From sequence record NC_004629.1: a stretch of DNA of 64,000 nt. One strand, 5' to 3'. Each line of letters begins with the position of its first letter. Position 1 is the stretch's first letter. A model generated the notes under the pieces. It saw only the letters and a program-made list of their open reading frames with translations, was not told where the DNA came from and ran no database searches. This document shows positions 1-12,097 of this stretch, piece after piece. A program made the translations under genes and the position numbers.

Positions 1-157
1 GACTAGGACCCATTACTGCATTATTACCATCGAAGAACTGATAAATGGATTCGAAAGGTAGATCAAGTTTATTTAGAGCATGCAACTTAGGTGACTGAAG
101 TTTAGCATATTCGCGTACACTATAATTTTTCAGAAACTGTGTAATATTTAAGCGCAT
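1..157 (-). CDS. 5' part of virion RNA polymerase beta-like subunit (phiKZ gp178-like), runs off window start
   Basis: Hand translation of the minus strand from ATG 157-155: MRLNITQFLKNYSVREYAKLQSPKLHALNKLDLPFESIYQFFDGNNAVMGPS, open to the window edge. It starts 2 nt after the beta' exon 2 stop. Product inferred from recalled phiKZ gene order. Confidence 0.7.
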   Translation of the reverse strand, partial: MRLNITQFLKNYSVREYAKLQSPKLHALNKLDLPFESIYQFFDGNNAVMGPS

Positions 158-159
158 GA

Positions 160-345
160 TTAATCCCTTTGTTTGGGTTCCCCAGTCATGTACCGAAGAG
201 TTAAATTGAGTGTATGGACACCAACACTAAATGCCAGTCGACCATCGGCATGTATATATGCAATACGTTTCTTAAAGAAAGCATCTGTTTCAGCGATAGC
301 TTCCTCTGAATAAACTGCGTTAAATGATACAGTGTCCCCGTCGAA
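160..345 (-). CDS. Exon 2 of virion RNAP beta' subunit (61 aa, not in ORF track)
   Basis: Translates FDGDTVSFNAVYSEEAIAETDAFFKKRIAYIHADGRLAFSVGVHTLNLTLRYMTGEPKQRD*. Joined to exon 1 (...LGAD) it restores ADFDGD in frame. Preceded by the intron terminal G at 346. Confidence 0.92.
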   Translation of the reverse strand, partial: FDGDTVSFNAVYSEEAIAETDAFFKKRIAYIHADGRLAFSVGVHTLNLTLRYMTGEPKQRD

Positions 346-659
346 CGTTATGTTCAGTATCAGTCGTTAATTGATACCCGCACCATTACGTGCAGCTCTA
401 GCTCTCGCTAGAAGACCAGACTATATCTTCACCTACAGCATTATCTGTTTAGGTGCTCTCCATTTCGAGTCACTTGACCCTACGGGGCGCAACCCCCTAG
501 TCGTTGAACGTTCCACATATTACAGTTAAGTAACTTAGCGGCTTCGCTGCTGATTGTCTCTACCTAATCATTTTCAAACATTCGCACTTACTGTTTCCAG
601 TTATGCTGTAGTTGATTAGTTTAACGAGAGTTTCCAGCAATTAAAAGAGTAAAACATAT

Positions 660-1733
660 TCATTTCGGAATATGTGGACTTATGTATTTTACTGCATAAT
701 TTCTAAAAATACAACCATGTTCAGATTTCCTTAGATGATAACCTAAGCAACCTGGTGTGACATTGAAAAACTCAGCAGCTTCCTTCAGTGAGTTTTTTAT
801 TAATACAGCTTCAGATTCTAATGATTCAATATGAATTCTACGATGGGTTTCCACATATACGAGATTATCATTATTCCATGGCGTATCGTCATCTTCGTAT
901 TTAAACTGTAATGACTGATTGTAAACAAGATTACTATTTTTAGTTAAACGTAATCTTAAAGTTTCACCATCTACACCAATTTCTCGGGCGCAGTGTTCTA
1001 TGCTGTAATAACGAGTTATATTGGTAGTTATAAGGTCTCTGACCAAAACTGCTTTGGAATTATGAAGTCCATTGATATGCGCATGTTCGCAATTTCTTTT
1101 ACGGGTAGCCCATTCAAGGTTTGTTAAATCATTACAATCTTTAATTGTATTTAAATGATTCACATCGAGTGAATCAACATTACCTGGATATTTTAAGAAA
1201 GCTAGACTAAGAAGACGGTGCATTCCTACAATTGTACGTTTACCTACATCCGGCTGAACACCATACATCAGATAACCATCTTCATTCATGTATGGTGAAA
1301 GATGATTACTGTTAACAGTGCTAAGTACTTGTCCAGCGCGATTAATCATGTATCTACTATATCCGGGAATATAACAGTATTCTTTTATTAATGGATGAGT
1401 AAGTTCGCCTTCAGGACACGCCCAAATAAAATTAGTTAGGCGATGATTACTTTTATTACCGTCTTTGTAAATAACGCGTAGTTTATGTAGTAACCGCATT
1501 GGTAATATGCAGTTTCTATACGTAACACCTAATACAACAGATAGTGACAAACCGTCAAACCATTCACCTGTTATATGTTCAGGAAAAAGATGTTCTCCTT
1601 CATCACTAACCATTGTGGTCAGTACGCGTTTACTTATACTTTCTCTAGCGATACCACTACAGCTGATTTCATACATGCCACCAGTATGTGGTATCTTTTT
1701 AAATCCTGGATTTTCAATGAATTTTTTTAACAT
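660..1733 (-). CDS. Intron-encoded HNH homing endonuclease (NUMOD4-HNH-NUMOD1, I-HmuI-like; gp179-like)
   Basis: HRLLSLAF...DVNHLNTIKDCNDLTNLEWATRKRNCEHA HNH motif; NUMOD4-like segments KKIPHTGGMYEISCSG and YIPGYSRYMINRAGQV; two C-terminal HTH-like repeats (YYSIEHCAREIGV, SLKEAAEFFNV). Confidence 0.9.
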   Translation of the reverse strand: MLKKFIENPGFKKIPHTGGMYEISCSGIARESISKRVLTTMVSDEGEHLFPEHITGEWFDGLSLSVVLGVTYRNCILPMRLLHKLRVIYKDGNKSNHRLTNFIWACPEGELTHPLIKEYCYIPGYSRYMINRAGQVLSTVNSNHLSPYMNEDGYLMYGVQPDVGKRTIVGMHRLLSLAFLKYPGNVDSLDVNHLNTIKDCNDLTNLEWATRKRNCEHAHINGLHNSKAVLVRDLITTNITRYYSIEHCAREIGVDGETLRLRLTKNSNLVYNQSLQFKYEDDDTPWNNDNLVYVETHRRIHIESLESEAVLIKNSLKEAAEFFNVTPGCLGYHLRKSEHGCIFRNYAVKYISPHIPK

Positions 1734-1738
1734 GGTTG

Positions 1739-1765
1739 TTATCCTATTTATTTCCTATAGGATAA
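1739..1765 (-). promoter_or_regulatory. Hairpin sequestering the HNH ribosome-binding site
   Basis: Perfect 9-bp inverted repeat TTATCCTAT-N9-ATAGGATAA; the 3' arm holds the AGGA element just upstream of the ATG at 1733. Confidence 0.55.
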
Positions 1766-1788
1766 CTAGATATACAGTATTACAATTA

Positions 1789-3258
1789 ATCCGCCCCCAA
1801 TGGCGCGAGAATAGAAGGCGATATGGATACTGAGTCGTGCCACTGGGCTGGTTTATTTAATTCAAACACAGGGAATTCTAAGGCTGGTTCCAACGTATCA
1901 TCACGTTCCCATTGATCATTTAACGGATAACGTAATTCACCCACTACAGTTGTTTTAACATACATCTTACAGGGGATAGAGCTATTGTAGTTTTCTACAG
2001 GATATCGTGTAACAAACGCTGAGTTTGTTCGCCACATACTTAATCCACTGAGGTAAACTAACTCAGCGTATGTGATAGGTCTTACAAACTTCTTATTTAG
2101 GTTTGTAGGTAATTCGTCAATATTGCGGAATATCCTGAAATTTTGTTTATCATCGACGTAGATAAGTGCTAAATAATGATCAGCAATTTCAATTGCACGT
2201 GAACGTTTTTCAATGACATCTAACTCATTGATGATTTGTTCTTGCCCTTCAGGAGTTCCCCATAAATCCATATCTTCGTTAGATATATCAACCCATTCTA
2301 AACGTAGTGTTTTCTTATTGATGAGCTGCACAGTGTTAGTAACTGTATCAAACACTTCACCAACTACACCTTGCCTTAGTGCAAAGATTGTACGCGGTGC
2401 AACAGAACGAGCTGCTTGATGTAAGCCAACTACGGCATCTTTGAATGTTGGTCGATTAGGTGAATCAAGATCAGCCGCATTAGTATCTAGCGAACTAATG
2501 ACGTTACGGGTACCATTGGCAATACGACGGGATGCCCATTTAGATTGGATATAACCTCGTTTACTACCTGCTAATAACCTTTCATAATGTTCATAAATAG
2601 CTAATACTGTATTTTGCATCGCTACTCGTTTGCGATCATAGATACTCAAGTCATCGTTTGGTCCAAAACTGTCAGGTACACCAAACGACTGATTTAATAG
2701 ATATCTATAATGTTCATTGACCTCATCCATCTCAACACGATTATTCTCATCAATCTCTGCATCACGATAAGCAGCAGGTGTTACAATCATGTCTTTAAAA
2801 ATACAGTTATCTTTATATTTTTCGATTAATTGTAACCTTGATAGCCGAATCCCTGACTTAGTGGTCCCAAAGTCAATTCGTTTCCAGTTATCAAAAAAGA
2901 ATGTATAACCAGTTTTACCAGTTAGTTCATCAGCGCGGATAAAATCTTTAATAGATTCATCAAATACTGCAAATGCCTTACCAAGAATAATTTCTTCATA
3001 GAAAGCTTTTAATTTAATTAAGTTTCGATATACAACTGGATGGATAAGTTCTAAACCTAAATGGATATATCCAAATAAACTCTCACGATCAGTTGATCCA
3101 ACTCTTCCAAAAATGGAAACAGAGAACAAACCATCTTCATGAAAGTTACCACCTAAACCTTCAAATATCTCATGACTCTTTACTTGACCTAAGAACTTTA
3201 ATTGTTCTTTAGTAGGAATAAGTAAAGAAATATTAAAAGGAACTAATGCCTTCTTCAT
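1789..3258 (-). CDS. Exon 1 of virion RNA polymerase beta' subunit (gp180-like); spliced product 551 aa
   Basis: DGLFSVSIFG, GYIHL, PAAYRD, RRIANGTRNVI and RYP motifs typical of beta' subunits; the ORF stops exactly at LGAD, inside the catalytic motif. Confidence 0.92.
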
Positions 3259-3333
3259 TTTCTATTTTCCTATTTTGGTAATACTAAGTTAAACAACGAT
3301 ATGATACTTTACTAATCGTCAATGGAGTTTAAT

Positions 3334-12097
<8,764 letters not shown>

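Follow-up and report, generated by a model that had tools for sequence, protein, structure and literature searches.

Pseudomonas phage phiKZ is the type phage of the nucleus-forming jumbo phages, and its gene PHIKZ180 raises a plain question, namely, how the product, gp180, can serve as a subunit of the virion RNA polymerase (vRNAP) when the recorded open reading frame (ORF) ends without the catalytic aspartates. The DNA analysed here, hereafter designated the window, comprises 64,000 nucleotides (nt) and corresponds to bases 186001–250000 of phiKZ; window positions 1–3400 are 100% identical to bases 186001–189400 of AF399011 / NC_004629. The stretch under study spans PHIKZ180, PHIKZ179, and the start of PHIKZ178, and it adjoins the tail lysin gene PHIKZ181. 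In RefSeq, PHIKZ180 is entered as a plain coding sequence (CDS) of 490 amino acids (aa), and nothing is annotated between PHIKZ179 and PHIKZ178. As described below, we have virtually no doubt that a mobile group I intron of 1443 nt, resembling subgroup IA, splits the (G)ADFDGD motif of gp180 and is spliced out to give a 551-aa subunit. Its anatomy, its match to a covariance model, its exact excision in related phages, and the ligated exons in vivo were all observed directly.

On the minus strand, the 490-aa ORF runs from 3258 to 1786 and ends with ...PLGAD followed by TAA, the GAT codon of the last aspartate closing at U1789. From position 345, directly after G346, the frame reads FDGDTVSFNAVY... 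(TTC GAC GGG GAC, encoding FDGD...) and stays open for 61 codons up to the TAA at 162–160; such an open frame resuming at this point is far beyond chance. Exon 1 and exon 2 thus give 490 + 61 = 551 aa, and the (G)ADFDGD motif is restored between D490 and F491. When each exon was searched separately against the PHROG 2986 profile, exon 1 covered positions 1–484 (expectation value (E), 3e-203) and exon 2 positions 485–538, that is, the two are contiguous (484|485) over the junction. The natural intronless gene of phage PA7 was used as a continuous comparator. Its alignment gap is exactly 1788..346, and residues 1–490 of its single 551-aa CDS correspond to exon 1 (99%) and residues 491–551 to exon 2 (98%), with neither gap nor overlap. 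The gap is slidable by one base, a T starting both sides, and the placement at 1789|1788 and 346|345 was chosen because only there does the exon end in U and the intron in G. As read from the sequence, the last exon base U1789 and the last intron base G346 fit the U...G rule of group I introns.

The spliced form is present in RNA. At least half of the sampled words of the stretch occur in each of 16 public RNA-seq runs, and four of these (X1, X5, X9, and X10), from four different studies, were aligned as assembled contigs. In X5, X9, and X10, that is, in three studies, a contig covering 100..344 resumes at 1788 and skips 1443 nt; one base is shared, so that the joint equals 345/1789. The joined contigs flank the joint with up to 245 + 595 nt and have no letter differing from phiKZ, whereas 30 differences separate phiKZ from the nearest intronless allele, that of PA7, over the stretch that the X10 contig covers. 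The source of the joined RNA is therefore phiKZ itself rather than a contaminating phage without the intron. Besides the joint, the same three runs yielded contigs of the intron and of unspliced junctions; precursor, product, and intron thus coexist in them. Moreover, in X1 and X5, a short contig of high depth, 433..346, runs directly into the Illumina adapter at 346, which marks the terminal G of the intron as the 3' end of an RNA. Over these final 88 intron nt, the contig reaches a depth of 459–559 as compared with 35–112 in its neighbors (X1 and X5); it may derive from a stable fragment of the intron 3' end, and an identical block in the intron of gp55 (see below) contributes to the depth.

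The folded part of the intron was recognized by Rfam Intron_gpI (RF00028), which covers 717..396 of the minus strand over the full model (positions 1–253) with 92.2 bits (gathering score, 50 bits; E, 1.4e-23). The two extra hairpins P7.1 and P7.2 stand between P7 and P3', as in subgroup IA, and the intron is best described as IA-like, an assignment made from these hairpins. A further Rfam match in the gene, to SNORD74 at 2950..3010 (21 bits, below threshold), was taken as chance. The positions of all features are collected in Table 1.

Table 1 Features of the split gene 180 and its intron (window coordinates)
Feature	Position	Strand	Remarks
gp178 start (vRNAP beta-like subunit)	2..157	minus	AUG 2 nt past the true gp180 stop codon
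Exon 2 of gp180	160..345	minus	FDGDTVSF...KQRD, 61 codons + TAA (162–160); unannotated in GenBank/RefSeq; PHROG 2986, PA7
Group I intron, 1443 nt	346..1788	minus	begins with UAA (in-frame stop right after the 5' splice site), ends with terminal G (omegaG) at 346; PA7 gap, RNA contigs
P9.1 + P9.2 hairpins	357..395	minus	after P9; 433..351 is an 83-nt block identical in the gp55 intron
Ribozyme core P3–P9	396..717	minus	P element 642..630, Q 555..546, R 509..498, S 429..418; Rfam Intron_gpI
P7.1 + P7.2, two extra hairpins	467..497	minus	insert of 33 nt separating P7 from P3', a subgroup IA feature
P2 hairpin, 8 base pairs (bp), 6-nt loop	654..675	minus	directly after the guide; read from sequence; conserved in fMGyn-Pae01
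PHIKZ179, predicted intron-encoded HNH homing endonuclease, 357 aa	660..1733	minus	in the loop of an extended P1; Pfam HNH_3, PHROG 59
Proposed internal guide GUCC	676..679	minus	would pair with exon GGAU (1792..1789), G-U wobble at the splice site; inside the last gp179 codons
Perfect 10-bp hairpin	1738..1766	minus	3' arm holds the AGGA Shine-Dalgarno sequence, 7–10 nt upstream of the gp179 AUG; read from sequence
Exon 1 of gp180 (PHIKZ180), vRNAP beta-prime-like N-terminal subunit	1789..3258	minus	490 codons ending ...PLGAD, last base U1789; PHROG 2986, PA7

An earlier note on this DNA had described the 490-aa ORF ending in PLGAD-TAA, the gap of 1443 nt, and the G before the resumed frame, and all of these coordinates and sequences hold. 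It had read them as a group I intron in the vRNAP gene, a reading borne out by the Rfam match, the intronless orthologs, the spliced RNA-seq contigs, and the literature, and its exact boundaries, restored GAD|FDGD, and 551-aa product are backed by PHROG 2986, the intronless PA7 gene, and the RNA-seq contigs. The four core elements that it had claimed were each located, as P, Q, R, and S. Of the checks it had proposed, the Rfam scan returned a full-model match, and intronless orthologs were found, PA7 being without exactly 1788..346. The spliced 345/1789 junction in RNA, on which it had staked the reading, is present at that very place in contigs of three studies. The note was also right that the ORF list leaves out exon 2, as do GenBank and RefSeq, which give the 490-aa ORF alone.

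The internal guide sequence was assigned by comparison with the two paralogous introns of phiKZ, in gp55 and gp71–73, where the protein sequences that accompany the structure of the non-virion RNA polymerase (nvRNAP), PDB 7OGP, fix the junctions. Both introns have matching guides in the same place before P2, namely, GUUA with UAAU in gp55 and GCC with GGU in gp71–73. Because each of the three different exon ends is matched by a guide of its own, the assignment of GUCC in the gp180 intron is supported, and GUCC would pair with the exon GGAU to form P1. As the guide is placed after the gp179 ORF, an extended P1 helix would carry the endonuclease ORF in its loop; the guide is overlapped by the final gp179 codons, and the gp179 stop codon is inside the P2 hairpin. 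An alternative guide, AUCC at 1762..1759 near the intron 5' end, was rejected; with it, the splice site would have U-A instead of a G-U wobble, and its position falls inside the 10-bp hairpin.

Among 47 phiKZ-like records that match the region, 10 have the full intron, 2 (OMKO1 and fMGyn-Pae01) have a shorter one, and about 35 are intronless, the last being without exactly the 1443 nt and covering just the 58% of the query outside the intron. The shorter intron is 481 nt long in both phages and lacks the endonuclease gene; that of fMGyn-Pae01 scores 88.4 bits with the Rfam model. In both fMGyn-Pae01 and OMKO1, a 960-nt deletion (corresponding to window 1685..726) takes nearly all of the endonuclease ORF and leaves its AUG, its first codons, and the ribozyme intact. 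All requirements for splicing must therefore lie within 1788..1686 and 725..346. Compensatory changes relative to phiKZ occur in P5 and P7.2 of the fMGyn-Pae01 intron, indicating selection on the intron fold. The intron parts of the two phages are 89.7% identical to phiKZ, as compared with 94.6% across the whole region under study. These introns would represent the endonuclease-loss stage of the homing cycle, and the allele pattern as a whole fits such a cycle. As a separate observation, 22 of the 35 differences between phiKZ and PA7 in window 1–3400 crowd into 2050..2172, mostly at every third base, 260–380 nt upstream of the intron site; this cluster may represent the boundary of a recombination or co-conversion tract from homing.

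The mechanism that we propose would run as follows. In the pre-mRNA, the exon GGAU would pair with the internal guide GUCC located past the endonuclease ORF, and a guanosine would attack after U1789. The terminal G346 would then mark the 3' splice site, and the exons would be ligated to GAU|UUC, leading to the active 551-aa subunit. The loop of P1 would encode the HNH homing endonuclease gp179, presumably dispensable for splicing, which may nick intronless gene-180 alleles of co-infecting phiKZ-like phages, whereupon the intron would be copied in. Splicing of the gp180 intron is predicted to be autocatalytic.

The rival that survives best, improbable as we consider it, accepts splicing but has it require a protein, either gp179 in a maturase role or some factor of host or phage origin. 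Some group I introns indeed need maturases, and autocatalysis is deduced here from the sequence. A preprint of 2025 (PMC12676376) describes gp179 as an intron-encoded homing endonuclease and reports that orf179 deletion mutants are viable, and natural endonuclease-less introns persist in this essential gene. These two facts disfavor a maturase role for gp179; the full canonical core also speaks for autocatalysis, although it leaves room for other cofactors.

Several points weigh against the proposed explanation. The exon–guide pairing comprises just 4 bp, and three paralogous introns are the basis on which the guide was assigned. Contigs cannot yield the spliced fraction, and run X1 has unspliced contigs only, which was not counted against splicing because contigs drop minor forms. 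Finally, a long-read study by Oxford Nanopore Technologies (ONT)-cappable-seq in 2024 reported finding no sign that the gp56, gp72, and gp179 introns are spliced (PMC10914365); the short-read contigs contradict this report for gp180. That report, together with the annotation of the 490-aa ORF alone in GenBank and RefSeq, would favor the absence of any splicing, in which case gp180 would be a truncated, catalytically dead protein of 490 aa and the FDGD... frame an untranslated relic or a separately made peptide. This we regard as scarcely credible in view of the ligated-exon contigs from three RNA-seq studies, of an exon 2 that lacks its own start codon and whose in-frame sequence is 98% conserved, and of the fold retained by the endonuclease-less intron; moreover, PMC10612078 treats gp180 experimentally as the carrier of DFDGD. 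Equally far-fetched is the idea that the joined contigs are artefacts of an intronless phiKZ-like contaminant or of template switching by reverse transcriptase, for which the prevalence of intronless records (about 35 of the 47) and the use of assembled contigs could be cited, since the contigs show 0 differences to phiKZ over 245 + 595 nt where the nearest intronless allele has 30, the same joint recurs in three studies with only 1 nt of homology, and its boundaries follow the U...G rule.

Besides the mobile intron itself, its ORF deserves comment. The HNH_3 domain of gp179 was detected by Pfam with 35.6 bits (cut-off, 24.8) and PHROG 59 at an E of 1e-30, while the DNA-binding module NUMOD1 reached 15.1 bits in Pfam, below its threshold of 22.8. 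From these profile matches, gp179 is predicted to have endonuclease activity and to promote homing. The hairpin at 1766..1738, which buries the Shine-Dalgarno sequence, likely limits the translation of gp179. The preprint cited above (PMC12676376) ascribes the missing transposon insertions in orf179 to polarity on 'downstream orf180'. Exon 1 of gene 180 is, however, upstream of orf179, and what lies downstream is the ribozyme core, exon 2, and gp178; the missing insertions are better explained by a broken intron or a lost exon 2 than by an endonuclease function.

As for the host gene, PMC10612078 describes gp180 as a vRNAP subunit with the universal DFDGD Mg-binding element, about 10 copies being packaged per virion, which supports the vRNAP identity proposed in the earlier note. 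PHROG 2986, matched by both exons, is named 'RNA polymerase beta subunit', and the motif of the PA7 ortholog aligns weakly (E, 0.37) to the largest subunit of Pol V in the PDB. Pfam gave no family for gp180 of phiKZ or for its PA7 ortholog. PDB sequence searches with exon 1 and exon 2 gave no match, from which we conclude that no vRNAP structure is available. Because the direct sequence evidence is weak, the subunit assignment leans on the literature and on PHROG 2986.

The gp180 intron has sisters in the same genome; phiKZ (RefSeq NC_004629.1) contains three Rfam Intron_gpI matches, two of them outside the window. The intron of gp55 (nvRNAP beta-prime; NC_004629.1, 49172–50539) has the junction ...APN|ADFDGD..., according to chain A of PDB 7OGP. 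It resembles the gp180 intron in lying in a paralogous gene at the NADFDGD motif and in carrying an HNH endonuclease, gp56, at the same intron position, and the two cores are 75% identical over 319 nt, including the identical 3' block (Table 1). It differs in being inserted 6 nt upstream (N|ADFDGD versus GAD|FDGD) with a guide that fits its own exon, and the endonucleases gp56 and gp179 share only about 32% identity. The likeness of the two introns points to a transfer from one paralogous site to the other and to gene conversion in recent time. In addition, a contig of run X9 (window 433..351 plus 35 further letters; partner at NC_004629.1 ~50172) links the terminal G of the gp55 intron with an internal position 3 nt 5' of the guide proposed for that intron, and it looks like a truncated intron circle of 368 nt, comparable to the L-19 form of Tetrahymena. 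No back-joint of this type is listed for the gp180 intron in the aligned RNA contigs. The third intron, that of gp71/73 (NC_004629.1, 64456–65672), has the junction ...HGG|KGV... in chain C of 7OGP, so that the last annotated codon of PHIKZ071 (N394) is intronic. Its first 14 bases form a perfect pairing with a segment close to the orf72 end, and this long P1 extension encloses the ORF.

A comparable arrangement is known from PhiPA3, also a nucleus-forming Pseudomonas jumbo phage, in which a group I intron with the HNH endonuclease gp210 occupies the conserved catalytic-site region of a vRNAP gene (Birkholz et al. 2024, PMC11620839). There, the host gene encodes the other, beta-like subunit (the gp178 ortholog), and gp210 and gp179 are distant homologs, with 31% identity over 58% of the query. 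Nicking and competition, or interference, against phiKZ have been shown for PhiPA3 gp210 (PMC11620839). Judged from background knowledge and the Rfam model, the classical phage group I introns with HNH nicking endonucleases (SPO1 I-HmuI and Bastille I-BasI; T4 td, nrdB, and sunY exemplify subgroup IA) share with the gp180 intron a subgroup IA-type core with P7.1/P7.2, insertion at the catalytic motif of an essential nucleic-acid enzyme, and the occurrence of intron-plus, endonuclease-less, and intron-minus alleles side by side. Unlike them, the gp180 intron has as its host gene a multisubunit RNA polymerase subunit rather than a DNA polymerase or nucleotide-metabolism gene, and its ORF would lie in the P1 loop. 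Tentatively, and with less than even confidence, we propose that the sister introns reflect ectopic movement between paralogous sites within one genome with continuing gene conversion, and that gp179, like PhiPA3 gp210, might be a weapon against the many intronless phiKZ-like phages; neither idea was found stated in the literature that could be consulted.

That gene 180 of phiKZ contains an intron is correct but already known. According to PMC10914365, Mesyanzhinov et al. (2002) predicted that gp56, gp72, and gp179 are endonucleases borne by introns, and PMC11512511 refers to Ceyssens et al. (2014) for the gp55 and gp180 introns. The novelty, which the earlier note had rated as moderate, is thus lower, the same intron in the same phage being in the literature. 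The value of the present analysis lies in the correction of the annotation and in the RNA evidence, for an otherwise ordinary mobile phage intron. The join of the two gp180 exons is still missing from GenBank and RefSeq, so that the gp180 on record has 490 aa and none of its catalytic aspartates, exon 2 remaining unannotated; automated analyses, antisense and transposon screens, and protein modelling that start from those ORFs will misread the enzyme. Collectively, the public RNA-seq evidence settles the published doubt on whether the gp180 intron splices.

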